The translations under genes and the position numbers were made by a program. This document shows, in pieces, positions 27,650 through 61,404 of a DNA stretch of 64,000 nucleotides (position 1 is its first letter; every line of letters starts with the position of its first letter). The notes beneath the pieces are model-generated. The model was not told the DNA's origin, made no database searches, and saw only the letters and a list, made by a program, of their open reading frames with translations. The stretch is from Oculina patagonica (taxonomy: Eukaryota): assembly GCF_052425735.1 (NCBI RefSeq), contig NC_135765.1, positions 27,218,001-27,282,000 of the forward strand, read 5' to 3'.

Positions 27650-28564
27650 TCAACACAAAATATGCTTCATGGCTGTGCGAATCTCTCGATCTCGCCAACA
27701 GTACAACAAAGGGTTCAGAGAGGAATTAAGGAAGATTAATGTAGCTGCAGTATAATAAACACCTGGCCAAAGCCTTAGTCCTACAAGAAACATTTTGAAA
27801 ACGATAGAATAAGGCAAGTAACAAAAGAGAAGTAAAATAAACACGATAAATGTGTTGAAAACAGTTTTCTTAAATCTTATTACCCTGCGAACTACACTTT
27901 CTTCTTCTTGTTGATGATGATGATGATGATGATGATGATAATAATGATGAATTTGTCTTTGATGGCGTCTTACAATGAGGTAGATTTTCAAATAAACACC
28001 AAAGTTTCCAGCTAGTAGGCAGAGAAATACGAATGATGGAACTGTGTCACATAATGTCGAGTACCATAAACATGAACTTGTAAAAATTCCAGTGAAAACC
28101 CAAATCGAGACAACAATCCATGTGACACGAAACGGTGTCACCACTGCACGGTATCTCAAATGCAACTGAAGAGCAAGCAAGCGATCGACTGCAATTGCTG
28201 TTATGGTAATGAATGAAACGATGGTCAAAAAAGTACCCAAAATGTCACCAAGTTTGAAAAGAGTATGTTCTCCACTTAGCATGTGCCCTATAAACAAGGG
28301 CTGAACAAGCAAGCCGACAGCAAGGTCTGATACAGCAAGACTTGCTAGCAAGATGTTTGTCGCCGAATGCAATGAAGGCGTCTTCCAAATTGTTATTAGG
28401 AGCGCTGTGTTTCCAAACAGTGCCGTGAAGCAGATAATAGCGTGAATTACGCATATTGCTATCATGTAGTTTAGTACCAGTTCAGAAAAGTCGAGCTTAG
28501 AAAGGTGTTCACCTGATATGTTCTTGTCAGAATTATTGACGTACCAAGAATTATTTTTATCCAT
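27650..28564 (-). CDS. Intronless class A GPCR, subfamily A copy 1 (304 aa)
   Basis: Seven hydrophobic helices; GN, LAVSD, DRL, CYLPY and NPLLY motifs; polyH in ICL3. Confidence 0.93.
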   Translation of the reverse strand: MDKNNSWYVNNSDKNISGEHLSKLDFSELVLNYMIAICVIHAIICFTALFGNTALLITIWKTPSLHSATNILLASLAVSDLAVGLLVQPLFIGHMLSGEHTLFKLGDILGTFLTIVSFITITAIAVDRLLALQLHLRYRAVVTPFRVTWIVVSIWVFTGIFTSSCLWYSTLCDTVPSFVFLCLLAGNFGVYLKIYLIVRRHQRQIHHYYHHHHHHHHQQEEESVVRRVIRFKKTVFNTFIVFILLLFCYLPYSIVFKMFLVGLRLWPGVYYTAATLIFLNSSLNPLLYCWRDREIRTAMKHILC

Positions 28565-29315
28565 GGCTTATCCAAGCGTTCTTAAAAATTTTAGCTGCTT
28601 TCGTTGCCGTCTTCTTGCATTGTTGGATTAAAAAACACAATGGGAATAGAGTGTTGACCTTGAAGGAAGTTAATTATGTTTTATTTCATTACCGACCAGA
28701 GAGTAATAGTCAACAGCAAAGAAAATTTTAAACAGGATTCTGCAAATACGCCTGTCCTTTTCTCTTGCCAATTGTCATGTCATTATTATTCATTATTCTT
28801 GTTGGTCGAAAATGGGACAACATTTGAAAACCTTTTTAATTAAAATATTGCAGGGAAAACGTAATTTTAATACACATGTTGAAATGCTTAAAATAGAAAT
28901 CTAATTAATTTGGAAAGTGCATGTATGTATAATTGCATTTCAAGGTAATTTTGCGCTGAATGGAAAATTAAACAAAGGAAAAACGTCTATGAAAATTACA
29001 AGCTGAGAAAAAACACAAAGTGTACAAACAAAGTCCTTTTATCAGTTGCTTCATATAAATTTTAGGAATAAATATAAATGTTTTGTGTTATTCAGAAAGA
29101 GGATTTTCATTACAAGGCTAGATGAGGACAGGTGGTTATATAGAATCCCTTTTCAACATTCCCTCTGCTCTTGAAATGACTTTGGTGAGAGCCAAATAAA
29201 TGATTTATAAACTTCAGTCAGGGTTTTCATTGTATTCCAAGCTATTTGTTTTCCACAAATCAAGGCGACAACCAAAGCCGTTCTTGCTTTGAATGAAAGA
29301 AAACTCGAAAAAGCT

Positions 29316-30251
29316 ATGGAAAGTAATTTTTCTTGGCCTTCTAATGATTCTGATAAAAACAACGTTTTACGATTTAACAACTACTTTAAAGAAGAAATCA
29401 GTTTCTGGATCGCAATGGTTATAATCAATGCTATTATCTGCGTTACTGCGTTATTTGGAAACTCTGTGATTCTAGTTACAATTTGGAAGACATCTTCTCT
29501 GCATTCAGTAGCGAATATCTTACTGGCAAGCCTCGCTGTATCAGACCTTGCTGTTGGATTGATCGGCCAGCCCATGTATATTGGAGGCATTGTAAGCAGG
29601 AAGCATACATTTTTCTTAATTTTTAACATTATGGGTACATTCTTTAGCATGGCGTCTTTCCTCAACATAACAGCAATAGGTATCGATCGTTTGCTCGCTC
29701 TTGAATTACATTTGCGATATCATGTAGTAGTGACACCGTTTCGAGCGACTGCGCTCGTTATCTTTATTTGGGTCATTTCTGGTATTTTTGCTAGCGTCCG
29801 AAGCTGGCATTTAATGGTATTTTACAGTGCCCCAACAGCAACCTTTATCAGCCTTCTTCTTGTAAACTTTGTTGTTTATTTAAAAATCTATCTTATTGTT
29901 CGACGCCATCAGAGACAGATTCAACAACAAAATAATCAACAACAACAAGAGAATAACATTTTCAGAGTAAAAAGATTCAAGAGAACTGCTTTAAACACAT
30001 TTCTTGTATACATTTTACTTCTTTGTTGCTACACACCTTATTCCTGTGTCATCAGCTTTATGGTCATTGCAGGTGTAAACTTTCCACCAGGTTTTTATGT
30101 CACAACGTCTACATTAGTTTTCCTTAATTCCTCTTTAAACCCTTTATTGTACTGTTGGCGAGATCGAGAGATTCTGCACTGCCGTGAAGCAACTGTTTCG
30201 ACGTTGTTTTTAACGTATTTTATTCCAAGAGATATTGACCATGGTTTTTAA
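29316..30251 (+). CDS. Intronless class A GPCR, subfamily B copy 1 (C-tail frameshifted)
   Basis: 7TM with ATG at 29316 (the ORF track starts at a TTG). One extra base near 30177 alters the tail after WRDREI. Confidence 0.88.
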   Translation: MESNFSWPSNDSDKNNVLRFNNYFKEEISFWIAMVIINAIICVTALFGNSVILVTIWKTSSLHSVANILLASLAVSDLAVGLIGQPMYIGGIVSRKHTFFLIFNIMGTFFSMASFLNITAIGIDRLLALELHLRYHVVVTPFRATALVIFIWVISGIFASVRSWHLMVFYSAPTATFISLLLVNFVVYLKIYLIVRRHQRQIQQQNNQQQQENNIFRVKRFKRTALNTFLVYILLLCCYTPYSCVISFMVIAGVNFPPGFYVTTSTLVFLNSSLNPLLYCWRDREILHCREATVSTLFLTYFIPRDIDHGF

Positions 30252-30887
30252 AAGTTTTGGAATAATATATTAGGCGTTATTCAAACTAAAACCTTACAGG
30301 CGAAATTAGTTTCTCAGAAAGAAGTAAAAGTTTTTACTGCCCGACGTCTTTAGCACCCTTGATCGCTAACGCTTCGTCTTAAAAGACTAAGTGTTGCATA
30401 GAATGCACGTCGTTAAGTGGTTCATAGTGTGCAACGATGTTATTTAGAGATTTTCATACGGTTTTCCCCCTTTTGTCTACCTGCACAAATGTTTGGCAAT
30501 GTAAACAGCTTAAGGTGGCTTGAACAAAAATGTATATAAAGTTAACATCACGCACGAGTTTTTGTTATTTACATGCATATGAGGAAAAACCCCTTTCTTA
30601 TCAGACGTTTTAATATATCGGTGTCGTTTACTTTTTACCAGGTTCTTTTACTGGGTTTTTACCGGTTCTTTAATGTTCCTGGACATCTACGCCGTAACAT
30701 GTCTCTAAAATAGTTTCTTGTCTTTTAAATTTGTTATGTTGATTTTTACAAGCAACTTTTGGTTAATGGCGTGACTGCTTTAGTTTTGGAAAAGAACTGA
30801 TATATTAAATCACTTTGCGACGTGAAAACGAGGTGGCATCTTTAAGGTGCACAAGGCTGTGTACGCATCAGCTAAGTGAAATGGACA

Positions 30888-31092
30888 GGGGAGCAGGGTT
30901 GGTGCAGTTTCGAGAGCGCTCGCCTCCCACTTATGTGGCTCAGGTGCGATTCTGGCCCGGTATCATATCTGGGTTGAGTTTGTTGTTGGTTTTCGCCTTG
31001 CTCCGAGGGCAATTCTCCGGGTTCTCCGGGTTTCCTTCCTCCTGAAGAACCAATGTTTTCAAATTCCAATTCTACCAAGATAGAGGACTCGC
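30888..31092 (+). mobile_element. tRNA-derived SINE (degenerate)
   Basis: tRNA-like head with A/B-box remnants and a TTCTCCGGG..CTCCGG core; duplicated at 39653-39857. Confidence 0.7.
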
Positions 31093-31710
31093 TTCCCAAC
31101 AAACATTTTTACAAGTGTGCTTTCATATTATTGTTATTATTTGTTTGACGTACTCGCTTCCCTGCAAAGTTGAATACGATCAAACAGATACTTGTTACAT
31201 CGTATTTATCAACAAAAACGCAGTGAAAACGAAAAATATTACAAGATGACACCCAAGTTTGTTGGGTGGCCACGGTAAGGCGCGTCACACTGTGAAACCA
31301 GCAAGCGCTGATGTGGCAGCCTCTCCAGATATAGCCATTAATTATGGATGAACAAGGCACAAAGTTATACGCATGAGCACAAGCTCTATTTGTGAGTGGT
31401 AATTTCCAGGTGATTTCCCTCGTTCAATCGATCAAAATGTTGAACAAAATATTACAATGAATATGTGTACAACCGAAATGTAATTTATTTATTTTAAAAA
31501 TCCAATCTGCAAGTTGGTATTTAAACAGCAATATAGCGACTTTTATCATGGATATTACATTAATTTCGAAGTAATGTTATTAATATTTTATGGAATGTGA
31601 AAATGAACCTAGAAAGACAATTTCTAAAATCACTTTAAAAAAAATGAATCCTGATTGGTATAAAGTTTTCTTTTTAAATGAGATTTCACAGCGCATGGTA
31701 AGAAACTTAT

Positions 31711-32017
31711 CACAGCATGAAAATTGGGATTTACATTAAATTAAAGGTCGTTAAATCTGTTGTAAAGTCGGTTGTCCAACTTACACCATTAATTAAATGT
31801 TGGAAAGGTGGTTAAACCGACCTTTACACTACCGTGTGTAAATGTGATTTAAAGCTAGTGTAAAGAAGTCTCTTTATCTTCCTTTACACTTGAGGCTAAA
31901 GCTGGGATAAAGGTCAGCTTTAAAAAATGTAAAAACGGCCTATAGCTGAATAAATTCCAAATTTACGCCAGCTTTATTTAGGCTTTACACCACGGTAAAG
32001 TTATGTTTTCATGCTGT
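31711..32017. mobile_element. CACAG-terminated MITE, copy 2
   Basis: Inverted copy of 22718-23036; empty site in copy B at ~40495. Confidence 0.75.
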
Positions 32018-32430
32018 CTTAGATGACAAAAGCTTTGGGCCTTTTTTGTATGTCTCTGCTTTTTTATTTGGGTTGTCAGTCAGTTGACAAATGTCAATCA
32101 GTTGAAGTGTGATTCCAAATTCAAGCTGACTTACCTTATAACAAAAGAAAATTTAATAACTATGGTAAATTTTAAGCTTGATGAAAATTAAGAAAATGTT
32201 TATTTTGTTCATTGTCCCACGCTCGTGACAATGGACATTTCATCTTTATCAAAAGAAAACTTATTTACTGAAAGCGTAAAAATCTCCTGTGCTATTGACA
32301 TAACGTTGCTGGCGGTAATGAAAAAATAATTAATAAACTTCAGTAAATGTAAAAATTGCTTTTTTTAATATTAGAAGAAGACAACATAAGCACCCAAGCC
32401 TAAAAGAAAGAGAAAAAGCTCGGACCAGCC

Positions 32431-33330
32431 ATGGAAATTAATTTTACTTGGCCTTCTAATAATTTTGCCGAGAACAACCCTAGTAGAGACCTACCTGTTA
32501 TCTACGGATTTTCTGAAACAGACCTGAATTTCAAGATCGCAAACTCCGTTATCATTGTTATTCTCTCCTTCACGGCACTATTCGGAAACTCAGCGCTTCT
32601 AACAACAATTTGGAAGACATCTTCTTTGCATTTGGTGGCAAATATCTTACTGGCAAGTCTTGCTGTATCAGATCTTGCCGTTGGCTTGATTGCTCAGCCC
32701 TTATTTATAGCCAACATGTTTAGCAGCAGAGAAAATACTGTAAACAAAGTTATAAACATTTTAGGTCCCATTCTGTCTCTTGCATCATTTTTCACCATTA
32801 CAGCAATTGCGGTCGATCGTTTGCTCGCTCTTCAATTGCATTTAAGGTATAAAGCAGTGGTGACACCATTTCGTGTGACATGGGCAGTTATCCTCATTTG
32901 GGTATTCGCGGTCATTTTTGCAAGTACCAAACTTTGGATTGCAAGCCTTTCTCGCACTATCGTATCATTTATGATTATTACCATTCTGGTTGCAAACTTT
33001 GCTGTTTATTTGAAAATCTATCTTATTGTTCGACGCCATCAAAATCAGATTCAACATCAACAACAGCAGGCGAACAACGAAAACTTGTTCAGCGTTAAAA
33101 GATTCAAGAAATCTGCAATAAACACATTTCTTGTGTATATTTTACTCCTGTGCTGTTATGCGCCTTATTCGCTCAGCGCCCAAATGACATTTTCAGGTGT
33201 AGGCGTTTTACAAAATGTCTATATGACGACTTTTACATTAGTTTTTCTGAATTCTTCTTTAAACCCTTTATTATACTGTTGGCGAGATCGAGAGATACGC
33301 ACAGCCATGAAACAACTGTTATGCTGTTGA
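32431..33330 (+). CDS. Intronless class A GPCR, subfamily C copy 1 (299 aa)
   Basis: Intact 7TM ORF with the family motifs. Confidence 0.93.
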   Translation: MEINFTWPSNNFAENNPSRDLPVIYGFSETDLNFKIANSVIIVILSFTALFGNSALLTTIWKTSSLHLVANILLASLAVSDLAVGLIAQPLFIANMFSSRENTVNKVINILGPILSLASFFTITAIAVDRLLALQLHLRYKAVVTPFRVTWAVILIWVFAVIFASTKLWIASLSRTIVSFMIITILVANFAVYLKIYLIVRRHQNQIQHQQQQANNENLFSVKRFKKSAINTFLVYILLLCCYAPYSLSAQMTFSGVGVLQNVYMTTFTLVFLNSSLNPLLYCWRDREIRTAMKQLLCC

Positions 33331-35962
33331 CTTAATGCATTTTTGTGTCCGGAGGAAATCTTCTGCAGGAGTTTTCCTTACAACAATTACGGTACTGTGT
33401 GGAAAAGAGAAATCTAAGCGACATTTTGTCCATGTTCTTCCGAAATTTCGCCGAAATTGTGTCTGAGATGGATACTAACAACTTGCTAAAATGTCAGAAT
33501 TCACGAAGTCACACCGCCCCTTTGCGATATAACAACAGTTAGTAGAAACTCAGCTGTGTTCTATTGGAAATCCGCGAATCCGATTGGTTACAAAGCGAAC
33601 AACTAGAGCACTTCTGTTTCCCAGAACGGAGAAGGGTGGGTACCCTAAGAAAAGAAAAACAAAATTACGCAAAAAGTGAAAGAATAATTAGTGATCGTCA
33701 TATTTTGAATTCAAAGTTTTTGTAGGGGAGTGTGAAGCAACGGTTCCTACCTAGAGCTACGTCAGAGCTACGTCATCAATATTGAATTTTGGGGTCGAAT
33801 CTGAGGCGTTTCACGAACGGTGATAACTTAGCACGTGAAGAGGGCGTCTGTTAACTCGCGTTAAGTAGAGATGTATATATAAAAGTAAGTTATAGTTAAT
33901 AGTTTTAAAAGTAAGTGACTTTTCTCATATATCTGGCCTTCGCAACATGCCGCTAAGAGGTAAACCACTCGTCAAGCTAAAAAAAGGCGCTTGATAAACA
34001 CAAACCATTAATTTATAAAATGCTATTTTGCTACTCACATGTTTCAACGCTGATTGTAAATGAAAAGAGTTAAATTTAAAGTAATTATAAAGGTAAATCC
34101 ATCCGTTTGGAATATCAAAAACCATGGAAAAGTGAAAAATATCGAGTCAAATGAAATAGAACTGCAATTTTTTTAAATAAATTACGTTGCAAGAAAATGA
34201 TAACAAAAATTTGGAGGAAAAAAGGAAAAATATATGGTCAAAAGGTTCAAATTAGAAATATACAGTGGAAAAAGGACAAAAAAGGAACAAGTTCGAAATA
34301 GAAGTCGTTTATTTTTATATAGTTTGCTCAAAGAAATGTTTTTGCATGTTATGTCCTTTATAAAAGAATGTATTTTTGGACGATACGAGACATAGTTGTA
34401 GAAGAATTGTTTTGGTTTTAATTGTAAGAAAAAAAACGTAAACCGAAATGAAGGCTTTTGAAAAGAGTATATTTGTAATGGTATTGTTGTAAATATTAAT
34501 TGTTAAAAATTGTTCAAGATTAAGAGGTGTAACTGAATTTTCACCAAATAAAAGCCCGACATTTGTTGCACATTACGTCTTGGCTGGGTAATTCAAGTAT
34601 ACAGTCCGCCCAAGCAACAAATTCGCAGAAAAAGGTCAATTCTGAATGTTTCTGATTGATATAATGGAATTTAAGCAAACCGCAACAACGACGAAGCCAT
34701 TTTGGAGCCCCTCCTGGGGGGGGGGGGGGGGAATATTCCTTTGTTTCCCCCAAAATTTTACCTGCTGTTCCCTCAAAGTATTTTGTCGAGTTTTGTGATC
34801 CGTGTTTCCTTAAATATCAGAAACACATCTTTTGTTTCCGTGTTCCCAGCTTTATTTTCCTTTTCTTCCCTTGTTCGTATTTTGTTTGATGTTGTAATTC
34901 ATGCAGTGAGGAGACTCACCAATGACTTAAAATAACGACAATTTACAAAATAAACCCTCCCCACCTAACTCTTCGCAAGTCGTTTGTCAGTGTCGTATTG
35001 ATTACCGAGGGAAGCGCGGGCGCGAGACCGGGGTTGTATCCCCTCTGCTTCCCCGAGTCGACCCATTCTACCTAAAAATCCTTCCAAGAATAATCCCTTT
35101 CAAATATATAAGACAATCATGGGCGATTCATTAGATTTAGCTCTTGAAGAAAGACCATACGACTTCCAATTATAAGCCTCTTTATTATTGGGAAACTTGT
35201 TTTATTTTTGACATGTATGTCATTAAAATATACCTTGCCTTGCGATGTTGATAACAAACTGTAGTTTTATATCGTTATGACAAGAGAGTTATACCACATG
35301 GGTGATCTTGTATGTACTTTATTTTTTCATACGCAATAGCCTTCCAAATAAACAAATACTTTGGAAACGAAAAATCGATTTTCGATGATTTTTAATTCAT
35401 CAATCGGTATAACAGTGTTTTTTGTTTCTTCAACGTGCAACCCTAAACGAATCCTTGACAACTAAAAACAGGGCACGAAGTTCTCGGTGTTGTGGTATGG
35501 GGTGCTTTCCATTAAGCCAAATATTTCGGAAATTTTGGTCGGAAGTCAAATGGAAAGTTGCATTTCGGTTCGGTCTGACCAGAATATTCAGGACCACCTC
35601 TGAAGGTCATCTACTTTGACCGTTCGAACCGAAATATGCAGTTCCATTTTGAGAAACTGTTCAGTTGTCTTACTTCAGTACAGTAACTTCTCACACTACA
35701 CAGAATGCGGGAAACTGGTTTACAAAGGAATGCAAAACCATTCCACTCGGTTGGCCAGATTCAGTAAGCGGAAAATTTTGTTCCATTTTACAAAGATCAG
35801 TTCCTGTTGGGAATGCTCGGAGAGGACAAATAAAGTATTCATTTCAGTTCAGTTCAAAACTGTTTAATGAATGTTTACTTCATACAGCCATGACTGTAAA
35901 TTCATTGCGCCAAACGCGTAAGGGAGCAAGAAAACAGAAAAAACCGATCAAAAGAATACTTG

Positions 35963-36847
35963 CTAAACGGCAGTGCGGATCTCTCTATCTCGCCAACAGT
36001 ACAACAAAGGATTCAGAGAAGAATTAAGAAAGATCAATGTCGTTGTAGTGTAATAAACACCTGGCCAAAGCCTTATACCTACAAGAAACATTTTGAAAAC
36101 GATAGAATAAGGCAAGTAACAAAAGAGAAGTAAAATGAACACGATAAATGTGTTGAAAACAGTTTTCTTGAGTCTTAATACCCTGCGAATTACACTCTCT
36201 TCTTGTTGTTGATGGTGATGAGGATGATGATGAATTTGTCTTTGATGGCGTCTTACAATGAGGTAGATTTTCAAATAAACACCAAAGTTTCCAGCTAGTA
36301 GGCAGAGAAATACGAATGATGGAACCGTGTCACATAATGTCGAGTACCATAAACATGAACTTGTAAAAATACCAGTGAAAACCCAAATCGACACAACGAC
36401 CCAAGTGGCACGAAACGGTGTCACAACTGCACGGTATCTCAGATGTAACTGAAGAGCAAGCAAGCGATCGACTGCAATTGCTGTTATTATGATGAATGAA
36501 ACGATGGTCAAAAGAGTACCCAAAATGTCACCAAGCTGGAAAAGAGTATGTTCTCCACTCAGCATGTTTCCTATAAACATGGGCTGAACAAGCAAGCCGA
36601 CAGCAAAGTCTGATACAGCAAGACTTGCTAGCAAGATGTTTGTCGCCGAATGCAATGAAGGCGTCTTCCAAATTGTTATTAGAAGCGCTGAATTTCCAAA
36701 CAGTGCCGTGAAGCAGATAATAGCATGGATTACGCAGATTGCTATCATGTAATTTAGTACCAGTTCAGAATAGTCGAGCTTAGAAAGGTGTTCACCTGAT
36801 ATGTTCTTGTCAGAATTATTGACAAACCAAGAACTATTATCTTCCAT
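35963..36847 (-). CDS. Intronless class A GPCR, subfamily A copy 2 (294 aa)
   Basis: Intact 7TM. The TAG after RTAV trims about 5 C-terminal residues. Confidence 0.92.
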   Translation of the reverse strand: MEDNSSWFVNNSDKNISGEHLSKLDYSELVLNYMIAICVIHAIICFTALFGNSALLITIWKTPSLHSATNILLASLAVSDFAVGLLVQPMFIGNMLSGEHTLFQLGDILGTLLTIVSFIIITAIAVDRLLALQLHLRYRAVVTPFRATWVVVSIWVFTGIFTSSCLWYSTLCDTVPSFVFLCLLAGNFGVYLKIYLIVRRHQRQIHHHPHHHQQQEESVIRRVLRLKKTVFNTFIVFILLLFCYLPYSIVFKMFLVGIRLWPGVYYTTTTLIFLNSSLNPLLYCWRDREIRTAV

Positions 36848-37608
36848 GGCTTATCCAAGCGTTTATTCAGAGTTCTTAAAAATCTTAGCTGCTTTGGTTG
36901 CCGTCTTCTTGCATTGCTGGATTAAAAAAAACACAATTGGAATAGAGTATTGACCTTGAAGGAAGTTTATTATGTTTAATTTCATTACTGACCACAGAGT
37001 AATTGTCAGCAGCAATGGAAATCTTAAATAGGATTCTTCAAACACGCCTGTCCTTTTCTCTTGCCAATTGTCATGTCGTTATTATTGTTGGTAGATCCAG
37101 AGAAAATGGAACAACATTTGAAAACCTTTTTAATTAAAATATTGCAGGGAAAACGTAATTTTAATATACATGTTGAAATGCTTAAAAAAGAAATCTAATT
37201 AATTTGGAAATACATGTATGTATAATTGCATTTCACGGTAATTTTGCCCTGAATGGAAAATTAAACAAAGGAAAAACGTCTATGAAAATTACAAGTTGAG
37301 AAAAAACACAAAGTGTACAAACAAAGTCCTTTTATCAGTTGCTTCATATAAATTTTAGGAATAAATATAAATGTTTTGTGTAATTCAGAAAGAGGATTTT
37401 CATTACAAGGCTAGATGAGGACAGGTGGTTATATAGAATCCCTTTTCAACATTCCCTCTGCTCTTGAAATGACTTTGGTGAGAGCCAAATAAATGATTTA
37501 TAAACTTCAGTCAGGGTTTTCATTGTATTCCAAGCTATTTGTTTTCCACAAATCAAGGCGACAACCAAAGCCGTTCTTGCTTTGAATGAAAGAAAACTCG
37601 AAAAAGCT

Positions 37609-38505
37609 ATGGAAAGTAATTTTTCTTGGCCTTCTAATGATTCTGATAAAAACAACGTTTTGCGATTGAACAACTACTTTAAAGAAGAGATTAGTTTCTG
37701 GATCGCACTGGTTGTAATCAATGCTATTATCTGCCTCACTGCGTTATTCGGAAACTCTGTGATTCTACTAACCATTTGGAAGACATCTTCTCTGCATTCA
37801 GTAGCTAATATCCTCCTGGCAAGTCTTGCCGTATCAGACCTTGCTGTTGGATTGATCGGCCAGCCCATGTATATTGGAGGCATTGTAAGCAGGAAGCATA
37901 CATTTTTCTTAATATTTAACATTATGGGTACATTCTTTAGCATGGCGTCTTTCCTCAACATAACAGCAATAGGTATCGATCGTTTGCTTGCTCTTGAATT
38001 ACATTTGCGATATCATGCAATAGTGACACCGTTTCGAGCGACCGCGCTCGTTGTATTTATTTGGGTCATTTCTGGTATTTTTGCCAGCGTCCGCAGCTGG
38101 CATTTAATGGTATTTTACAGTGCCCCAACAGCAACCTTTATCAGCCTTCTTCTTGTAAACTTTGTTGTTTATTTAAAAATCTATCTTATTGTTCGACGCC
38201 ATCAGAGACAGATTCAACAACAAAATAATCAACAACAACAAGAGAATAACATTTTCAGAGTAAAAAGATTCAAGAGAACTGCTTTAAACACATTTCTTGT
38301 ATACAATTTACTTCTCTGTTGCTACATACCTTATTCCTTTGTTATCAGCGTTATGGTCATTGCAGGTGTAAACTTTTCACCAGGTTTTTATGTCACAACA
38401 TCTACATTAGTTTTCCTTAATTCCTCTTTAAACCCTTTATTGTACTGTTGGCGAGATCGTGAGATTCGCACAGCCGTAAAGCAACTGTTTCGACGTTGTT
38501 TTTAA
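37609..38505 (+). CDS. Intronless class A GPCR, subfamily B copy 2
   Basis: Intact 7TM with ATG at 37609. Confidence 0.93.
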   Translation: MESNFSWPSNDSDKNNVLRLNNYFKEEISFWIALVVINAIICLTALFGNSVILLTIWKTSSLHSVANILLASLAVSDLAVGLIGQPMYIGGIVSRKHTFFLIFNIMGTFFSMASFLNITAIGIDRLLALELHLRYHAIVTPFRATALVVFIWVISGIFASVRSWHLMVFYSAPTATFISLLLVNFVVYLKIYLIVRRHQRQIQQQNNQQQQENNIFRVKRFKRTALNTFLVYNLLLCCYIPYSFVISVMVIAGVNFSPGFYVTTSTLVFLNSSLNPLLYCWRDREIRTAVKQLFRRCF

Positions 38506-38807
38506 CGTTTTTTTTTTTTCACGAAATATTGACTATGATTTTTAAAACTTGTGGAATAATATATTAGGCTTTATCCAAACTCAACCTTTACCGATGAAAT
38601 TAGTTTCTCAGAAAGAAGTAAAGGTTTTTACTCCCCGACGTCTTTAGCACTCTTGATCGCTAACGCTACGTCTTGAAAGCCTAAGTGTTGCATAGAATGC
38701 ATGACGTTGAGTGCTTCATAATGTGCAACGATGTTTTTTGAAGATTTTCATGCGGTTTTTCCCCTTTTGTCTACCTGCACCAATGTTTGGCAAAGTAAAC
38801 AGCTAAA

Positions 38808-39309
38808 GGGCCTGTTTATGTGGAGTAGAGTTGTCCCTGGTAGGAGGGTTACCCTCTCCCCCGTGCTATCTTTTACCGAGCGTTTATATGAGAAGGTTGT
38901 CCCTGTTGACCGAGCCAAAACTTGGCCCTCCCGGTTCAAAAGACTGGCGAGAGTTATTTTGAAATATCTATTATGGCGGGCTTTTCTAAAATCAGGAACG
39001 CTGAAACATCCCGGAAGACCACTTTTGACAAATTTACCGCCGACTTCGATGTTGTTTTGGCCGATTCCAGCATTTGCGCATGCTCCGTATCTGTCAACTT
39101 GTCCCTGGTAGGCGAGGCAAAAATTACCAAACTGTTTATATGGAAAAAAGTTGGCTCGCTCCCAAGGGTCACCCTATCTTCAAAGCGAGTGACCCTCAGT
39201 GACCCAGCTTTTTATAAAGAAACGAATGAAAAGCTCTTTCGCCCGGGGTGGCTCGGTATGGAGGTTAACCCTCCTACCAGGGACAACTCTTCTCCAAATA
39301 AACAGGCCC
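38808..39309. mobile_element. PIF/Harbinger-type MITE
   Basis: TIRs of ~50 bp, GGGCCTGTTTA...TAAACAGGCCC. Inserted at a TAA that is empty in copy A (~30511). Confidence 0.8.
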
Positions 39310-39652
39310 TAAGGTGGCTGGAAGAAAAATGCATATAAAGTTACCATCAAGCACGAATTCTTGTTATTTACATGAGGAAAAAACTTTTTCTTATCAGACG
39401 TTTTAATATATTCGTGTCTTTTACTTTTTACTGGTTCTTTAATGTTCTGGACATACACGCCGTAACATTTCTCTAAAATAGTTTCTTGTCTTTTAAATTT
39501 ATTATATTAGTGTTTACGAGCAACGTTTGGTTAATGGCGTGACTGCTCTAGTTTTGGAAAAGAACTGATATGTTAAATCACTTTGTGACGGGAAAACGAG
39601 ATGGCATCTTTAAGGTGCACAAGACAGTGCACGCATCAAAGTGATATGGACA

Positions 39653-39857
39653 GGGGAGCAGGGCTGGCGTATTTGTGAGAGTGCTCGCCTCACACTTATG
39701 TGGCTCAGGTGCGATTCTGGCCCGGTATCATATCTGAGTTGAGTTTGTTGCTAGTTGTCGCCTTGCTCCGAGGGCAATTCTCCGGGTTCTCTGGTTTTCC
39801 TCCCTCCTGAAGAACCAATGTTTCCAAATTCCAATTCTACCAAGATAGAGGACTCGC
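39653..39857 (+). mobile_element. tRNA-derived SINE (duplicate copy)
   Basis: Homologous to 30888-31092. Confidence 0.7.
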
Positions 39858-39861
39858 ATTA

Positions 39862-40082
39862 CAGTGCGACGCGCCTTACCGTGGCCACCCAACAAACATT
39901 TTTACAAGTGTGCTTTCATATTATTATTATTTGTTTGACGTACTCGCTTCCCTGCAAAATTGAATACGATCAAACAGATACTTGTTACATCGTATTTATC
40001 AACAAAAACGCAGTGAAAACGAAAAATATTACAAGATGACACCCAAGTTTGTTGGGTGGCCACGGTAAGGCGCGTCACACTG
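39862..40082. mobile_element. Tc1/mariner-type MITE
   Basis: TIRs of ~36 bp (CAGTGCGACGCGCCTTACCGTGGCCACCCAACAAAC) with TA on the left. The copy A version (~31095-31292) has lost its left end. Confidence 0.75.
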
Positions 40083-40912
40083 TGAAACCAGCAAGCGCTG
40101 ATATGGCATCCTCTCCAGATATAGCCATTAATTATGGATGAACAAGGCACAAAGTTATACGCATGAGCACAAGTTCTATTTGTGAGTGGTAATTTCCAGG
40201 TGATGTCCCTCATTCAATCGATCAAAATGTTGAACAAAATATTACAATGAATATGTGTACAACCGAAATGTAATTTATTTATTTTAAAAATCCAATCCAA
40301 GTTGGTATTTAAACAGCAATATAGCGACTTTTATCATGGATATTACATTAATTTCGAAGTAATGTTATTAATATTTTATGGAATGTGAAATGAACCTAGA
40401 AAGACAATTTTTAAAATCACTTTTTTTAAAAAAAAAATGAATCCTGATTGGTATTAAGTTTTCCTTTTAAATGAGATTTAACAAGGTAAGGAACTTAGAT
40501 GACAAAGGCTTTAACCCTTTTTTGCATTTCTCTGTTTTTTTGATGTGGTTTGTCAGTCAGTTGACAAATGTCAATAGGTTGATGTGTGATTCCAAATTCA
40601 AGCTGAGTTACCTTATAACAAAAGAAAACTTAATAAATATGGTAAATTGTAAGCTCGATGCAAAATAAGAAAAAGTTCATTCTGTTTATCATTGTCCCAC
40701 GCTTGTGACAATGGACATTTCATCTTTATCAAAAGAAAAGTTATTTACTGAAAGTGTGAAGATCTCCTGTGCTATTGACAAAACGTTGCTGGAGATAATG
40801 GAAGAAAAATTAATTTAACTTCAGTGGATGCAAGAATTGCTTTTTTTGAACAGTACAAGAAGACAACAAAAGCGCTCAAACCTCAAAGAAAGAGAGAAAG
40901 CTTGGAACGGCC

Positions 40913-48350: not shown

Positions 48351-49274
48351 ATGGAAATTAATTTTACCTCGCGTTCCAGTAATTTTGCCAAGAACAACCC
48401 TAGAAGAGTTCTACCTGATCTCCATGGATTTTCTGAACAAGAACTGAATTTCAAGATCGCAAACACCGTAATTAATATTATTCTCTCCCTCACGGCGCTA
48501 CTCGGAAACTCTGCGATTCTACTAACAATCTGGAAGACGTCCTCTTTGCATTCGGCGGCAAATATCTTGCTGGCAAGCCTTGCTGTATCAGACGTTGCCG
48601 TTGGCTTGATTGTCCAGCCCTTGTTTATAGCAAACATGCTTAGTAGCGGAGAAAATACTGTTCACTTAGCTTTGAACATTTTGGGTCCCGTCCTGGCCAT
48701 CGCGTCTTTTTTTACCATTACAGCGATTGCGGTCGATCGCTTGCTCGCTCTTCAATTGCATTTAAGGTATAAAGCGGTAGTGACACTATTTCGTGTGACA
48801 TGGGCAGTTATCCTCATTTGGGTATTCGCGGTCATTTTTGCAAGTTCAAAACTTTGGATTGCAAGCTTATCTCACACTATCATATCTATTATGATTATTA
48901 CCATTTTGGTTGCAAACTTTGCTGTTTATTTCAAAATCTATCTTATTGTTCGACGCCATCAAAGACAGATTGAACCTCATCATCAACTACAACTTCAACA
49001 ACAACAACAACAGGCGAACAACGAGAACTTCTTCAGCGTTAAAAGGTTTAAGAAATCTGCTATGAACAAATTCCTAGTGAACATTTTTCTTCTGTGTTGT
49101 TACGCGCCTTATTCTCTCAGCGCCCAAATGAAATTTGCAGGTGTTGTCATTTCACCAAATGTTTTTATAACAACTTTTACATTAGTTTATCTTAACTCTT
49201 CTCTAAATCCTCTTTTGTACTGTTGGCGAGATCGAGAGATACGCACAGCCATGAAAAGACTGTTTTGCTGTTGA
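48351..49274 (+). CDS. Intronless class A GPCR, subfamily C copy 4 (307 aa)
   Basis: Intact 7TM ORF. Confidence 0.93.
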   Translation: MEINFTSRSSNFAKNNPRRVLPDLHGFSEQELNFKIANTVINIILSLTALLGNSAILLTIWKTSSLHSAANILLASLAVSDVAVGLIVQPLFIANMLSSGENTVHLALNILGPVLAIASFFTITAIAVDRLLALQLHLRYKAVVTLFRVTWAVILIWVFAVIFASSKLWIASLSHTIISIMIITILVANFAVYFKIYLIVRRHQRQIEPHHQLQLQQQQQQANNENFFSVKRFKKSAMNKFLVNIFLLCCYAPYSLSAQMKFAGVVISPNVFITTFTLVYLNSSLNPLLYCWRDREIRTAMKRLFCC

Positions 49275-50838: not shown

Positions 50839-51150
50839 CTAGTTATGCAACGCTTTCGAGTGGTATACTATGAAATATCCCACGAGTCACTTGTATTTTC
50901 TCGGTATACACACGAGCCTTTAGGCGAGTGTATATACCAAGAAAATACAAGTGACAAGTGGGATATTCCATAGTATACCACGAGAAAGTGTTGTGTAACT
51001 ACTTTATACCATGCCATAGAAAATACGCTCACTAAATTTCGACGAGAATACAATCGCAGCGCACGATGGGAAGGTTGGGTTGAATACCGTCGAATATACA
51101 ACGGCTATCCTGTATTCTGATTGGCTGTATTTTCTATGGCATGGTAAAAA
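50839..51150. mobile_element. Non-autonomous element with ~165-bp terminal hairpin
   Basis: Hairpin TAGTTATGCAAC...GTTGTGTAACTA, then TACCATGCCATAGAAAATAC ... GTATTTTCTATGGCATGGTA. Confidence 0.7.
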
Positions 51151-51349
51151 AAACAGTATGAAACTACTCAAAATTTCACGATCTCGCCAGCAGAACAAAA
51201 AAAGATTTAGATAAGAATTAAGGCAAACTAATGTAACTGTTACAATATGAAAAAGTGGCGAAGTAATTTAACCTGTAAGATACATTATTATGGCAATGGA
51301 ATGAGGCATGATACAACAGAGAAGGAAAGTATACCAGAAATAAGTTTAA

Positions 51350-52064
51350 AGCCTGGTCTTCACTAGCGACGCAAGCACAAGCGCAAGCACAAGCGCAAGC
51401 ACAAGCGCAAGCACAAGCACAAGCATAACAGCTCTTATTTCACCGTGAAAATAAGCACAAGCGCAAGCACATGCACAAGGATCAATTTTTTTTTCTTTTC
51501 TTGTGTTTGCGCTTGTTCTTGCGTTTGTGTGAAAACGAAACACCGCATAAGCACAAAAACATTGTTTACGTCTGGCGGTGCCTAGCCATTTAAAGCACTC
51601 GTTCCAAATTCCACTGTGTCTGAGAATTTGAACAAAGTAGCGGAGGTCGCGCTTGATTTTAATAACAGTTTTCAGTTTTCTGTTCGGAAAAGTGCAGGGA
51701 ATTTAAAGACAAAAACAAAAAGGTACAAGTGTCACAAGCGTGGGCTTGAATAGCGAAACAAATGGAGATGACTTCTTCATTCTTAAAAGTATGTAAAACC
51801 CCAAATGTTTTGTTCTCCTTTTTTTTAGTCACTTTTGCTTTCTTCGTCACAAGAGTGGAAGAGAAAACAAAACTCGATGCCTGAGTGTTTCTGCCGCGAT
51901 ATTTGCCGAGAGAACGGAGTCGAGAACGGAGCCTTCTAACTTGTAAACTTCGTGTTCTTATGCTTGTGCTTATGCTTTTGTCGACGTTCGTTTTCACTTG
52001 GCACAATCTACTTATGCATTCACATGCTTTCGCTTATGCTTGCGTTGCTAGTGAAAACCAGGCT
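51350..52064. mobile_element. PIF/Harbinger-type MITE with (GCACAA)n subterminal repeats
   Basis: TIRs AGCCTGGTCTTCACTAGCGACGCAAGCA / TGCTTGCGTTGCTAGTGAAAACCAGGCT. TAA TSD at 51347-51349 and 52065-52067. Confidence 0.88.
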
Positions 52065-52671
52065 TAAGGCAGATCTCCTAAACCTTTTCACACTGAAAAT
52101 GTTGTCCTTATTCGCCTCTTGCTGTTGACGTTGAATCGGTCTGTGATGGCGACGAACAATGAGGTAGATTTCGAAATAAATAACAAAGTTAACAAGGAGC
52201 ACGTAGAAAGCAAAAGCCGATGCGTCAATGTCAGATGCCCTTGTATTTCTTAGTTCCGCGACTGTACAAATACTGGAAAACATCCAAATAGAAATGACCA
52301 GCCAAGTGACACGAAACAGTGTCACTACTTCTTCGTACCTCAAGTGTAAATGAAGAGCGAGCAAGCGATCGACTGCAATTGCTATCAAAGTGAAGAAAGA
52401 AGTGGAGCAAAAAAAAATGTTAACACGTAAGGGGACAGTTTCATTCCCGGTTAAGAAGAACACCACAACTAGGGGCTGACCGATCAATCCAACAGCAAGG
52501 TCTGATACAGCAAAACTTGCCAATAAGATATTCTCCACCGAATGCAATGAAAATGTCTTCCAAATCGCTGTTAGAATCGCAGAGTTCCCAGAGCAGTAAG
52601 CAGAGAATGGCGTGTATTACAACCATTGCGTTCCAGATATTTAATTCGTGTTCAGAATATCTGTTATTGGT

Positions 52672-54493: not shown

Positions 54494-55399
54494 TCAATGG
54501 CAAAATACTTGCTTTATAGCTGTGCGGATTTCACGATCTCGCCAACAGTACAATAAAGGATTTAGAGAAGAATTAAGAAAAATTAATGTCAAAGTTATTG
54601 TATAAACTCTTGGCGACATGCCACCGTCCACAAGAGCAAAGCAATAAGGCATATAACAAAACAGAAGTAATATGTACACCATGAAAGTGTTTAAAGCTGA
54701 TTTCTTGAATCTTGTAACGCTAAAGATGTTTGCATTATTCGCCAGTTGTTGTTGTTGTTGTTGTTGCTGATGTTGAATCTGTGTTTGATGGCGTCGAACA
54801 ATGAGGTAGATTTTCAAATAAACTGAAAAATTTCCAACTAGAAGACTGATTATCGTAACAAATTCGACAGTGTCAAGAAATCTTAGGGTCAAATTCGACA
54901 GCAGCGTTCTTACACCAGAGAACACCCAAATAAAAATAACAACCAAAGTCACACGAAAGGGTGTCACTACTTCATGATACCTCAAATGTAACTGAAGAAC
55001 AAGAAAGCGATCGACTATAATTGCTGTAATGGTGACGAACGACGCGCAGCCCAAAAATGAACTCGAATTGTTAAAAAGATGTCTTACAATATCATTTCTG
55101 GTCAGCAAGTATGCTGCAAACGAGGGCTCGACAATTAAGCCAACAGCAAGGTCTGATACAGCAAGACTTGCCAGTAAGAAATTTGCCACCGAATGCAAAG
55201 ACGATATCTTCCAAATTGTTATTAGGATAGCAGAGTTTCCGAACAACGCTGTGAAGGAGAGAGAGACATTCAAAATGCTTACAATCCAGTTATGCAATCC
55301 AATGGGTGCTTCTTCAAAAATTTCGTTTGGTTCTAAAAGGTTAATGAAAGTGTCATTTTCTTTAGAGTTATTAAATGGCCAAGAACAGTTAATGTTCAT
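54494..55399 (-). CDS. Intronless class A GPCR, subfamily D copy 1 (301 aa)
   Basis: Intact 7TM; DRF, CYMPY and NPLLY motifs. Confidence 0.93.
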   Translation of the reverse strand: MNINCSWPFNNSKENDTFINLLEPNEIFEEAPIGLHNWIVSILNVSLSFTALFGNSAILITIWKISSLHSVANFLLASLAVSDLAVGLIVEPSFAAYLLTRNDIVRHLFNNSSSFLGCASFVTITAIIVDRFLVLQLHLRYHEVVTPFRVTLVVIFIWVFSGVRTLLSNLTLRFLDTVEFVTIISLLVGNFSVYLKIYLIVRRHQTQIQHQQQQQQQQLANNANIFSVTRFKKSALNTFMVYILLLFCYMPYCFALVDGGMSPRVYTITLTLIFLNSSLNPLLYCWRDREIRTAIKQVFCH

Positions 55400-57502: not shown

Positions 57503-58447
57503 TTAACCGAAAAACAATTGTTTTATGGCTGTGCGGATCTCTCGATCTCGCCAACAGTACAATAAAGGATTTAAAGAAGAATTGAGGAAAACTAATGTCA
57601 AAGTTATTGTATAAACTCTTAGCGACATGCCACCGTCCACAAGAGCAAAGCAATAAGGCATGTAACATAACAGAAGTAATATGTACACCATGAAAGTGTT
57701 TAAAGCTGATGTCTTGAATCTTGTTACGCTAAAGATGTTTTCATTACTCGCCTGTTGCTGTTGTTGATGATGTTGTTGCTGTTGTTGAATCTGTGTTCGA
57801 TGACGTCTAACAATGAGGTAGATTTTCAAATATACAGCAAAGTTTGCAACAAGAAGACTTATCGTCGTAGCAACTTCGACAGTGTCAAATAATTTCAGGT
57901 TTAAGTTCGACAATAGCGTGGCTACGGCAGTGAACACCCAAATAAATATAACTACCCAAGTCACACGAAAGGGTGTCACAATTGCATGATACCTCAAATG
58001 TAACTGAAGAACGAGCAAGCGATCGACTGTAATGGCTGTAATGGTGATCAAGGACACAGAGCACAGAAAGTAACTACAAATGTTAAAAAGTAGGTTAACG
58101 ATGCGTATTTTGCTTAGCAAGTATGCTATAAGCAAGGGCTGGACAATCAATCCAACAGCAAGGTCTGATACAGCAAGACTTGCTAGTAGGATATTCGCCA
58201 CCGAATGCAAGAAAGACGTCTTCCAAATTGTTAGGATAACCACAGTGTTTTCAAACAGCGCTATTGAGGCGAGAAAGGCATTCAAAACACAGATTATGAT
58301 CCATACACTATCATTAAAGGGAGCTTGTTCAAAAGTTTCGTTGGAATCAAGAGGCTCGATGCAAGTGTCATTCTTTTCAGAATTGTTAAAAGGCCAAGTG
58401 CAGTTCATTGTCGTGTTTGAGTCGAGCGTGATTGCATTTGAAGACAT
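57503..58447 (-). CDS. Intronless class A GPCR, subfamily D copy 2 (314 aa; alternative ATG at 58408)
   Basis: Intact 7TM ORF. Confidence 0.92.
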   Translation of the reverse strand: MSSNAITLDSNTTMNCTWPFNNSEKNDTCIEPLDSNETFEQAPFNDSVWIIICVLNAFLASIALFENTVVILTIWKTSFLHSVANILLASLAVSDLAVGLIVQPLLIAYLLSKIRIVNLLFNICSYFLCSVSLITITAITVDRLLVLQLHLRYHAIVTPFRVTWVVIFIWVFTAVATLLSNLNLKLFDTVEVATTISLLVANFAVYLKIYLIVRRHRTQIQQQQQHHQQQQQASNENIFSVTRFKTSALNTFMVYILLLLCYMPYCFALVDGGMSLRVYTITLTLVFLNSSLNPLLYCWRDREIRTAIKQLFFG

Positions 58448-59128: not shown

Positions 59129-59795
59129 TCAATGGCAAAACAGTTGCTTCGAAGCTGTGCAGATCTCTCGATCTCGCCAACAATACAATAATAGGTTTAG
59201 GGAAGAATTAAGGAACCCTAATGTAACAACAGAAAAATATACAATTGGCGAAATGATTGTAACTCCTAAAAGTACCATTTTGACGGCAGCGAACGAACAA
59301 GCCATGTAACAACATAGTATCAAAATGTACACGAAAAATGTGTTCAAAGCAGATTTCTTGAATTTTTTTACGCTAAAAATAGAATCGTCATTCGAATCTT
59401 GTTGTTGATGTTGAATCTGTCTCTGGTGGCGTCGAACAATGAGATAAATTGTGAAATAAACGGCAAAGTTTCCAGCTAAAAGGCAGGTGATTAAAGTATA
59501 TAACGCAATGTCGGCTAGGCTTAAAGTCCACCGTTTCGTGAAAGGAAAAATAGCAGTGAATACCCAGATAAAAATTACCGGGTAACACGAAATGATGTCA
59601 CCACTGCACGGTATCTCAAATGTAACTGAAGAGCGAGCAAGCGGTCGACTGCAATTGCTGAAACGGCGATGAAAGATACCGTGCACAAGAGATGTCTCAA
59701 AATGACAACATTTCTCAGTGCAAAAAGTATCATACACTGTTATTCTAGGACCCAACATTTTCGCTATACACAAGGGCTGGACAACCAAGACAACA
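59129..59795 (-). pseudogene. GPCR pseudogene (5'-truncated, frameshifted)
   Basis: Starts in TM2 (VVQP). The TM3/DRL region is out of frame, TM5-TM7 are recognisable, and NP has changed to NL. Confidence 0.88.
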
Positions 59796-60501
59796 AGTGA
59801 TGTCTGTAGGGGAGTTAATCTTTAAAGTTTAAAGAAAATAAGTTTTATCACAACTCATGTAAAGTCCCTGATTTGATTGATTAAACTTTAGTTACCATAG
59901 CAACAGTGCAAAAGCTCGATTTTCATTCAATATTCGCACAATATTTTTGTAATTAAAAAATCTATCGATAGGTCAAATTACCTACAGTATGAGATAGTTA
60001 TTCAACAAACAATATGTGCTGAACAATGGCTCTGAAAATAAAAATAAATGACTTTTGAAAACATATAGTTAATATTGCATGAAAGTATTAATGGAATTTA
60101 TGAAAATAAAACAGCATGCAAATAACGACTTCTGTTCGAAAGGATATGCTATTATTTTATTCTTTTATAGCGTGAATTCGTTTTTTATGTCATCCCTCGG
60201 CAGCGTTGCTTAATTTATGAATTGGAAGAATGATTACATTTTCCAAACAATTATAGTATGACAGATCACGCAGCAATCGCGAGAGAGAGCCAGAAAGTGT
60301 GTACTGAGTCCCCAAAACCTTTATTAATTTCCTGTGCTATTGAAATAACTTTGTTAGCAGCAGTGAAATGAATAAGTAATAAACCACAGTTAATGTAAAT
60401 ATTGTTTCTGAAGCTGTTTTTTTTTTCCTCAGTAGAGAGAGACGACAGCGATATATATAGCTTTGAACGAAACGACGAACAGAAACTAATTGCATGCAAC
60501 G

Positions 60502-61404
60502 ATGGAAATCAACTTTACTGAGGCTAACAATAATTCTGACAAAACCAATTTTAGTGGAAACTTCTCGGGACGTGACAGATATTCTGTTGTACATAAACTA
60601 AATTACAGTATAGCACTCTGCGTCATCAATGTCATTCTCTGCTTTGCGACGGTGTTGGAAAACATTGGCTTTCTAATAACAATAAGGAAGACATCTTTGC
60701 ATTCAGTGGCAAAAATCTTATTGACCAGTCTTGCTGTATCAGACCTTGCAGTTGGTTTGGTTGGCGTTCCCTTGTTTATAGCAATCATGTTAAGCGGCGG
60801 CATAACTATTGTCATATTTGGTAACGTATTGGGTCCATTTTTAGGGATGGCGTCTTTTCTTACCGTTACAGCAATTGGTGTCGACCGCTTGCTTGCTCTC
60901 CAGTTGCACTTGATGTATGAAGCAGTGGTGACGTCGTCTCGTGTCACTTTCGTGGTCATTTTCATTTGGGTGTTCTCTGGTATGTGCACAAGCATGTTGC
61001 TCTTAAATTCAAAAGAACCTGGTTTGATTGCAATATCTGCTGTTTCCATCAGCTTTCTTGCTGGAAACTTTGTTGTTTATTTGAAAATCTACTCTATTGT
61101 TCGACGCCATCAAAGACAGATTCAACAACAGCAACAACAACAAGCAAATAACGAAAACATTTTCAGCGTTAAAAGATTCAAGAAATCTGCTATAAACACA
61201 TTTTTTGTGTTCATTCTACTCTTGTGTTGTTACACGCCATATTCTGTGTGCATTAGTTTGCGCCTTTCAGGTGCGTGTAGTTCGACAAACGTTTACAACA
61301 CAACAGTTACATTTGTTTATCTTGACTCTTCCTTAAACCCTTTATTGTACTGTTGGCGAGATAAAGAGATCCGCGCAGCCATGAAACAACTGTTTCGCTG
61401 CTGA
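60502..61404 (+). CDS. Intronless class A GPCR (300 aa), divergent member
   Basis: Intact 7TM with ATG at 60502; LDSSLNPLLY. Confidence 0.92.
   Translation: MEINFTEANNNSDKTNFSGNFSGRDRYSVVHKLNYSIALCVINVILCFATVLENIGFLITIRKTSLHSVAKILLTSLAVSDLAVGLVGVPLFIAIMLSGGITIVIFGNVLGPFLGMASFLTVTAIGVDRLLALQLHLMYEAVVTSSRVTFVVIFIWVFSGMCTSMLLLNSKEPGLIAISAVSISFLAGNFVVYLKIYSIVRRHQRQIQQQQQQQANNENIFSVKRFKKSAINTFFVFILLLCCYTPYSVCISLRLSGACSSTNVYNTTVTFVYLDSSLNPLLYCWRDKEIRAAMKQLFRC

Follow-up and report, generated by a model that had tools for sequence, protein, structure and literature searches.

Fourteen G-protein-coupled receptor (GPCR) loci clustered between positions 27650 and 61404 of a 64-kb window of the coral Oculina patagonica (NC_135765.1, positions 27,218,001 to 27,282,000) form an array shaped by birth-and-death evolution in the strict sense. 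Judged from sequence and a predicted fold, the description of their products as receptors with a common G-protein face and a diversified outer half is solid. We tentatively read the array as a set of ligand-diversified sensors, chemoreceptors in the broad sense, which would share one signalling interface and evolve by birth-and-death and gene conversion. The loci lie on both strands and were delimited by open reading frame (ORF) listing and by a tblastn search of the whole window with the 11 open receptors as queries, which returned no further homologous loci outside this interval. Open frames of 294-314 aa are present at 11 of the 14 loci (R01-R07, R09, R11, R12 and R14), and three copies are dead (R08psi, R10psi and R13psi), in agreement with a first-pass annotation of the sequence that had counted 11 open and three dead single-exon receptors in 34 kb. 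The wholly canonical genes number nine, since R02 and R04 bear lesions in helix 8 or at the C-terminus (Table 1). A genome-wide profile search covered the 529-Mb assembly, and all its matches at 27.2 Mb of contig C8 fall in the window, so that, among the scored matches, the cluster lies wholly within it.

Maximum-likelihood (ML) trees, which took in the window genes, paralogs from the same genome, a cluster of six genes spanning 21 kb in another coral assembly (L001; ENA ERZ25067872) and other database homologs, resolved seven subfamilies, A to G. Strongly supported sister clades of A, B, C, E and F were found in the L001 coral. There the six genes are laid out as A+, B+, C+, F-, E-, B+ within 21 kb, and the order in the window (A B C, A B C, B Cpsi, C, Fpsi, D D, Gpsi, E) parallels this arrangement. 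An intact L001 gene is the sister of the dead F copy, R10psi (support 100/100), and an intact protein of a further coral assembly, P0017, is that of the dead G copy, R13psi (support 100/96). The cross-coral trees and the gene order together indicate that an ancestral cluster predates the species split. This cluster held at least seven subfamilies and is older than the split from at least one other coral; A, B and C expanded in this lineage by local and segmental duplication, and F and G died here. Within the genome, the window cluster does not form a clade of its own: paralogs at 10.2 Mb of contig C8 are the nearest relatives of subfamily D, and a paralog at 24.8 Mb of the same contig sits near A and B.

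The segmental component is visible in self-alignment as a three-gene duplication of about 8.3 kb (A-B-C; Table 1), the two copies of which are 91% identical over R01-R02, 88% identical in intergenic sequence and 83% identical over the R03 block. Tandem duplicates, subfamilies shared between corals, lineage-specific gains and pseudogenes with intact orthologues elsewhere were thus all observed, and the segmental duplication, the cross-coral trees and these pseudogenes substantiate the birth-and-death evolution that the first-pass annotation had proposed.

The dead copies were lost in different ways. R08psi lacks approximately the first 51 codons and is interrupted by a TAG at 45076 and, near 45465, by a frameshift of +7 bp. 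In R13psi the frame shifts near 59582, and the 5' third has degenerated, with stop codons at 59850 and 59847. The frame of R10psi changes near 52592-52597, and an inverted-repeat element of about 717 bp parts the fifth transmembrane helix (TM5) from TM6, separating the last third of the gene. The 41-nt terminal inverted repeats of this element (51349-51389 and 52025-52065) are 90% complementary and have TTAA-like flanks, which suggests a TTAA-targeting (piggyBac-type) or TWA-targeting miniature inverted-repeat transposable element, once active in this coral lineage. The element also carries internal GCAAGCACAAGC-type repeats and appears to be a non-autonomous transposon. Two open copies bear milder changes: in R02 a 1-nt insertion just past the REI motif swaps helix 8 for an unrelated 25-aa tail, and in R04 an AAG>TAG nonsense change removes the final seven residues. 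Each of them is one member of the two youngest duplicate pairs (R02/R05 and R01/R04).

Discordance between coding and flanking sequence was observed in subfamily C. R03 and R06 hold corresponding positions in the two copies of the segmental duplication, with flanks that are 90-93% identical, as against 78-84% for their coding sequences (CDS). The R03 CDS is closer to that of R09, whose flanks are essentially unalignable with those of R03, and the ML tree joins R03 with R09 (support 99/93). Synonymous divergence (dS) between R03 and R06 is 0.29, compared to 0.16-0.19 for co-duplicated pairs; since it is raised, selection on the amino acid sequence cannot explain the discordance between CDS and flanks. 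Ectopic gene conversion has probably occurred among the coding sequences of subfamily C. A MaxChi-type test for recombination among the intact subfamily C CDS was not significant (p = 0.107). The significant triplets of this test (p = 0.001-0.005) all include R08psi and may reflect only pseudogene decay; the discordance between flanks and CDS is the better evidence for conversion.

All seven ORFs tested matched the class A receptor profile PF00001 (7tm_1), with E-values of 1e-20 to 8e-27 and scores of 74.6-94.8 bits against a cut-off of 30.5 bits. With generic residue numbering anchored on N53, D81, R130, W157, N189, P245 and P279 of R03, the class A micro-switches N1.50, D2.50, D/E-R at 3.49-3.50, W4.50, P6.50 and NPxxY were recognized in each of the 11 open genes. 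Every one of these genes has Gly, Cys or Ser, and never Asp, at position 3.32; F, N, G, H, R or V, and never Cys, at 3.25; DRL or DRF in place of DRY; C-Y-x-P at 6.47-6.50, with Tyr at 6.48; and Asn in place of Pro at 5.50. The Asn5.50 feature is absent from the first-pass annotation, whose motif claims (no Asp3.32, no Cys3.25, CYxP) hold in all 11 open genes by alignment.

An AlphaFold2 (AF2) model of R03, built from a 70-sequence alignment (predicted local distance difference test, pLDDT, 80.4; predicted template modeling score, pTM, 0.77), shows seven TM helices and helix 8. In the model a single residue lies between the end of TM4 at 169 and the start of TM5 at 171, and therefore the second extracellular loop (ECL2) is essentially one residue long, in line with the very short ECL2 noted before. 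The N-terminus of R03 comprises 28 residues, which are disordered in the model and contain N-glycosylation sequons. The third intracellular loop (ICL3) of all copies contains a length-variable low-complexity tract (27895-27954 in R01). In subfamily A this tract is rich in His (HHYYHHHHHHHHQQ), elsewhere it is poly-Gln, and it was flagged as a repeat during read mapping. Its variation suggests replication slippage, and the tract could possibly act as a metal-binding or scaffold-binding loop.

Pairwise omega, the ratio of nonsynonymous to synonymous divergence, ranged from 0.19 to 0.47 among the open copies and from 0.19 to 0.25 in the young pairs R01-R04 and R02-R05, and all open copies are under purifying selection. 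When sites were partitioned into halves by the helix boundaries of the R03 model, omega was 0.36-0.42 in the extracellular half and 0.20-0.21 in the cytoplasmic half. Mean column entropy followed the same partition, with 1.38 bits in the outer half and 0.49 bits in the cytoplasmic half (Mann-Whitney p = 3e-18). This site-wise comparison confirms the near-invariant cytoplasmic face and variable outer half of the first-pass annotation, and it supports a G-protein face common to all genes.

The position of the family among known receptors was assessed by sequence and by fold. In a PDB-sequence profile search, beta2AR, A2A, D2, H2, TAAR13e and MC3R were nearly tied (E-values of 1e-20 to 1e-24, about 20-24% identity), with MC3R among the best matches (2e-20) and no better than beta2AR, A2A or H2. 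Foldseek searches against PDB and Swiss-Prot models returned A2A, A3, H2, 5-HT1E and beta-adrenergic receptors at TM-scores of approximately 0.75-0.80 and 18-24% identity, with A2A, 5-HT1E, beta1AR and H2 at about 0.75-0.78 and 20-24%. Because known receptors of several classes score alike, the family is alpha-group-like without a specific orthologue, and we describe it as coral-specific, single-exon, alpha-group-like class A GPCRs; one-to-one orthologues among conserved bilaterian receptors, which would have counted against the first-pass annotation, did not emerge from these searches.

Membership of several individual classes was considered and rejected. The vertebrate-type olfactory receptor (OR) profile PF13853 (7tm_4) gave 22.8-25.3 bits against a cut-off of 27 bits, and the match is limited to the N-terminal half, at profile positions ~3-126 of 280. 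Vertebrate ORs have a long ECL2 with conserved cysteines and a disulfide between Cys3.25 and ECL2, and the ECL2 of about one residue and the absence of the Cys3.25 disulfide also rule out OR membership. The parallels to OR motifs that the first-pass annotation had drawn (of the LHxPMY, DRYVAICxPLRY and LNPxIYSLRNKE type) proved to be generic class A features, because an alignment with beta2AR shows the same DRYxAIxxPxxY and NSxxNPxxYC patterns. Its statement that the genes are not aminergic was upheld: aminergic, trace amine-associated receptor (TAAR) and histamine H2 membership is ruled out by the lack, in 11 of 11 genes, of the Asp at 3.32 that serves as amine counter-ion. Adenosine receptors have Asn at 6.55, a phenylalanine in ECL2 that contacts adenine, and ECL2 disulfides; in the array, 6.55 is F, S, T, A or I or a gap, ECL2 is nearly absent and Cys3.25 is missing, which excludes this class as well.

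The closest architectural analogues are the melanocortin receptors (MECA cluster), which the modelled coral receptors resemble in a very short ECL2, the lack of a Cys3.25-ECL2 disulfide and the lack of Pro5.50, as well as in compact size (~300 aa), a short N-terminus and an intronless CDS. The acidic residues 2.60, 3.25 and 3.29, which we take to be the calcium and ligand site of MC4R, are not conserved in the array, where 2.60 is L, M, I or S, 3.25 is non-acidic, and 3.29 is D in three of 11 genes and N in the rest. Melanocortin receptors also differ from the array genes at two further motifs, where the latter have DRL for DRY and Tyr for Trp at 6.48. Among automatic names, paralogs are called 'adenosine receptor A3-like', 'A2a-like' or 'histamine H2 receptor-like' at NCBI, and related cnidarian clusters 'melanocortin receptor 4-like' or 'adenosine receptor A2b-like'. 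The automated mislabelling as melanocortin- or adenosine-like that had been predicted is therefore real.

Compared to vertebrate OR and TAAR clusters, the array shows a similar organization, namely single-exon CDS, tandem arrays in both orientations, birth-and-death with pseudogenes, gene conversion, and a conserved intracellular face with a variable outer half. The genes differ from those of the vertebrate clusters in failing 7tm_4 and in having neither a long ECL2 nor an ECL2 disulfide, and TAARs need the Asp3.32 that the array genes lack.

In every subfamily, homology between paralogs reaches about 200 bp beyond the CDS on the 5' side of the ATG. Within this block, 10 of the 11 open genes carry a single copy of a 17-nt core, ATTTCCTnTGCTnTTGA, which lies in sense orientation 124-159 bp ahead of the ATG (Table 1); the core also precedes all six L001 genes at a similar offset and in the same orientation. 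At up to three mismatches, 14 matches to the core were present in the window, as against 4.3 expected, and none of 100 shuffles reached 14. The core sits at about -140, and a TATA-like stretch lies downstream of it, at about -95. Whereas the block aligns, DNA further upstream is unalignable (40-47% in forced alignments). The nearest own-genome paralogs have degenerate copies of the core, and distant family clusters have none. We consider it probable that the block is a compact promoter plus 5' untranslated region (5'UTR) duplicated with each gene. A conserved 5'UTR splice acceptor was considered and discarded, as D and E are the only subfamilies with a pyrimidine tract that leads into CAG.

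Not every copy has retained the block. R10psi keeps it (53336-53208), and it is absent from R08psi, R13psi and the ORF-intact R09. The upstream flank of R09 (48101-48350) is unalignable with those of its closest paralogs, R03 and R06, and R09 may be a transcriptionally orphaned copy whose ORF is still undecayed. E-box-like hexamers (CAGGTG, CAGATG, CAGCTG) were observed about 185 bp upstream of the ATG in R02, R05, R07, R11, R12 and R09; they lie upstream of the core, at a conserved position in B, D and R09, and are absent or altered in A, R03/R06 and E. E-box sites are bound by proneural basic helix-loop-helix factors, and as a regulatory sign the hexamers provide weak evidence.

The array is one of many in its genome. 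At least 130 close full-length paralogs (E < 1e-49) were identified, arranged in many tandem arrays on contigs that include C11, C12 and C14. Of the other large clusters of the family, the closest (C14:11761036-11817544) comprises at least 12 matches in about 56 kb, two with internal stops, and includes the NCBI protein named 'adenosine receptor A3-like'. Family members with more than 50% identity occur in many coral assemblies, including that of Pocillopora meandrina. In the orthogroups that corals have amplified by tandem duplication, rhodopsin-like GPCRs are the commonest domain (34 of 192) and are of unknown function (Noel et al. 2023, PMC10236652). Those orthogroups and the present family are alike in comprising coral-specific class A GPCRs with tandem amplification and genus- or species-specific copy number, and the array is thus not unusual for this genome or for corals, being a new example of a published phenomenon. 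That study reports the class at the level of orthogroups and domains, and the array is resolved here to subfamilies, synteny, lesions, conversion and an upstream block. As far as the literature searched shows, the subfamily structure, the cross-species synteny, the dated lesions, the conversion signal and the upstream block had not been described before.

Four probable RNA runs were mapped on positions 27600-33400. Two of them, X1 and X2, gave one low-depth contig each (32939-33178 and 33078-33299, respectively), both on the 3' CDS of R03, and R01 and R02 had no coverage in any of the four runs over this interval. For R12, word shares of 0.06-0.14 were found in several probable RNA runs. This trace coverage fits very sparse expression as well as its absence, and shows neither expression nor silence. 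Contigs of the probable RNA runs also include intergenic segments of 30-50 nt with a depth of up to ~1000 (30970-31009, 31257-31293 and 31804-31854), which are probably fragments of abundant repeat or transposon transcripts and not local transcription.

The reading of the array as ligand-diversified sensors with one shared signalling interface, which we put forward tentatively, would work as follows. As the cytoplasmic surface is kept in every copy, all receptors would be expected to feed one G-protein pathway, and as the extracellular half differs between copies, the preferred ligand would differ from one receptor to the next. The outer half, which has Tyr6.48, a mostly hydrophobic lining, hardly any ECL2 and no disulfide to this loop, would form an open pocket, and the cues could be small, largely hydrophobic or amphipathic molecules. 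Since a compact upstream module of about 200 bp appears to travel with each gene, each copy may be an autonomous transcription unit. Clustered, single-exon, fast-duplicating class A GPCRs have been proposed as chemoreceptors elsewhere, namely the 'surreal' GPCRs of sea urchins and subsets of lophotrochozoan receptors (PMC9897584, PMC11886862). The logic of clustering, single exons and lineage-specific duplication is the same there and for the coral array; for the urchin genes, differential expression in pedicellariae and tube feet is cited as support. In coral planulae, the aboral sensory pole is enriched in GPCRs (10.1101/2024.10.30.621027), and GPCRs rise with larval settlement competence (PMC5755313), neither observation being specific to this family.

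Several results weigh against the sensor reading. Omega exceeded 1 in neither the inner nor the outer half, and the pattern of a conserved inner and a variable outer half is typical of most class A paralog sets and not specific to chemoreceptors. When 34 canonical pocket positions were compared with the other outer-half sites, the window genes showed no excess variation (entropy p = 0.28, Grantham p = 0.20). In the 70-sequence family alignment the excess was marginal (p = 0.046), and the four most radically variable outer-TM sites family-wide (4.60, 3.37, 4.56 and 3.36) are all canonical pocket positions. The excess variation at pocket sites on which the first-pass annotation had staked its sensory interpretation was therefore not found in the window and is marginal across the family, and the pocket-specific signal expected of chemoreceptors appears weak here. 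Selective constraint on the upstream block as a whole was not apparent, its identity between subfamilies (62%) being equal to that of four-fold degenerate sites (62%). As a genome-wide marker of GPCR genes the 17-mer was rejected, because its 357 matches, compared to 130 for a reversed control, are not GPCR-specific; many of them are one recurrent variant resembling an unrelated repeat. Run searches found array genes in none of the runs recorded as RNA. Finally, the conservation of subfamilies and of their order between corals indicates that turnover is moderate rather than explosive, which fits receptors for endogenous ligands equally well.

Such receptors, tuned to cnidarian neuropeptides, lipids or purine- or amine-like transmitters, would serve internal cell-cell signalling and not environmental sensing, an explanation that we regard as somewhat unlikely and that nevertheless accommodates several of our data: the conserved subfamilies and gene order, the purifying selection on all copies (omega 0.2-0.47) and the architecture shared with peptide-binding melanocortin receptors (minimal ECL2, no Cys3.25, no Pro5.50). 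In Nematostella, moreover, 31 of more than 1000 class A GPCRs have been deorphanised as peptide receptors, and these stem from lineage-specific expansions (PMC11087051). However, sequence and fold group the present family with amine, adenosine and MECA-type receptors and not with the peptide-receptor group, the acidic melanocortin residues are absent, and the at least 130 close paralogs far exceed the 33 neuropeptide precursors of the Nematostella peptide library (PMC11087051). Pseudogenes and decaying young duplicates further suggest that the genes are individually dispensable. The same losses could be taken as the signature of an array that is largely redundant or decaying, in which duplication outpaces removal and most copies are silent and without distinct function. 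Three of 14 copies are dead, R02 and R04 add helix-8 lesions, R09 has no upstream block and the RNA traces are unclear in the probable RNA runs. This account is nevertheless highly improbable, given that omega is well below 1 in every comparison, the young pairs (0.19-0.25) included, that none of the 11 open copies has lost a class A micro-switch, and that orthologous subfamilies have been kept intact across species.

A role as immune or symbiosis sensors, by which the receptors would detect microbial or symbiont metabolites and have expanded alongside the innate-immune receptor families of corals, was suggested for amplified coral GPCRs by Noel et al. 2023 (PMC10236652), who place them beside innate-immune receptors and propose functions in immunity or host-symbiont interaction. 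The lineage-specific expansions fit this proposal, and a TNFR-like gene lies upstream of the array in the window, adjacency alone being weak evidence. A Pfam scan found no immune-type domain or motif in the array proteins, and the proposal overlaps with chemosensation, microbial cues being chemical cues; we hold it to be quite doubtful. The sensor reading also has a more far-reaching form, which we consider improbable, if less so than the immune one: the family would be a true cnidarian chemoreceptor repertoire that arose from an alpha-group (amine/MECA-like) ancestor, separately from the ORs and TAARs of bilaterians. Per-gene promoter modules would make expression sparse or mutually exclusive among sensory cells of the larval aboral region or the tentacles, and module-less copies such as R09 would have been silenced before ORF decay.

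Table 1 Receptor genes, pseudogenes and associated features of the array, with positions in the 64-kb window.
Feature	Position	Strand	Subfamily	Remarks
R01	27650..28564	-	A	Intact, 304 aa, His-rich ICL3
R02	29316..30251	+	B	ORF open; 1-nt insertion near 30175 replaces helix 8
R03	32431..33330	+	C	Intact, 299 aa; reference for AF2 model
R04	35963..36847	-	A	Recent duplicate of R01, 92% aa identity; nonsense change at C-terminus
R05	37609..38505	+	B	Intact, recent duplicate of R02
R06	40913..41821	+	C	Intact, positional duplicate of R03
R07	43635..44546	+	B	Intact
R08psi	45067..45829	+	C	Pseudogene, 5'-truncated, without upstream block
R09	48351..49274	+	C	Intact ORF, without upstream block
R10psi	51139..52671	-	F	Dead; TM6-7 piece displaced by element
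Terminal inverted repeat element inside R10psi	51349..52065			~717 bp
R11	54494..55399	-	D	Intact
R12	57503..58447	-	D	Intact; 13-aa N-terminal extension if first ATG used
R13psi	59129..59873	-	G	Dead
R14	60502..61404	+	E	Intact, single copy
Segmental duplication, copy 1	27513..33531		A-B-C	R01-R02-R03; self-alignment
Segmental duplication, copy 2	35810..41996			R04-R05-R06; self-alignment
17-nt core, example (R03)	32282..32298	+		
17-nt core, other starts				28710(-), 29158(+), 37006(-), 37451(+), 40762(+), 43477(+), 55543(-), 58571(-), 60327(+)

The surroundings of the array in the window are of a different nature. Upstream lies a multi-exon TNFR-type gene unrelated to the GPCRs, recognizable by a cysteine-rich repeat ORF with CxxCxxC patterns at 18148-18531 (+) and at about 23061-23338. 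Directly past R14, at 61434-62569, five masked runs of N are broken by short serine/histidine-coding repeat fragments.

The way in which coral larvae and polyps perceive settlement, microbial and food cues is relevant to reef restoration, and to our knowledge no cnidarian chemoreceptor has been identified so far. The array offers a compact test case in this field, with seven conserved subfamilies that have coral orthologues, young duplicates in which ligand tuning may be compared, dated losses of genes and a putative promoter block common to most open copies. Rather than representing a new kind of system, it is of value as a worked example and as a set of targets for deorphanisation.

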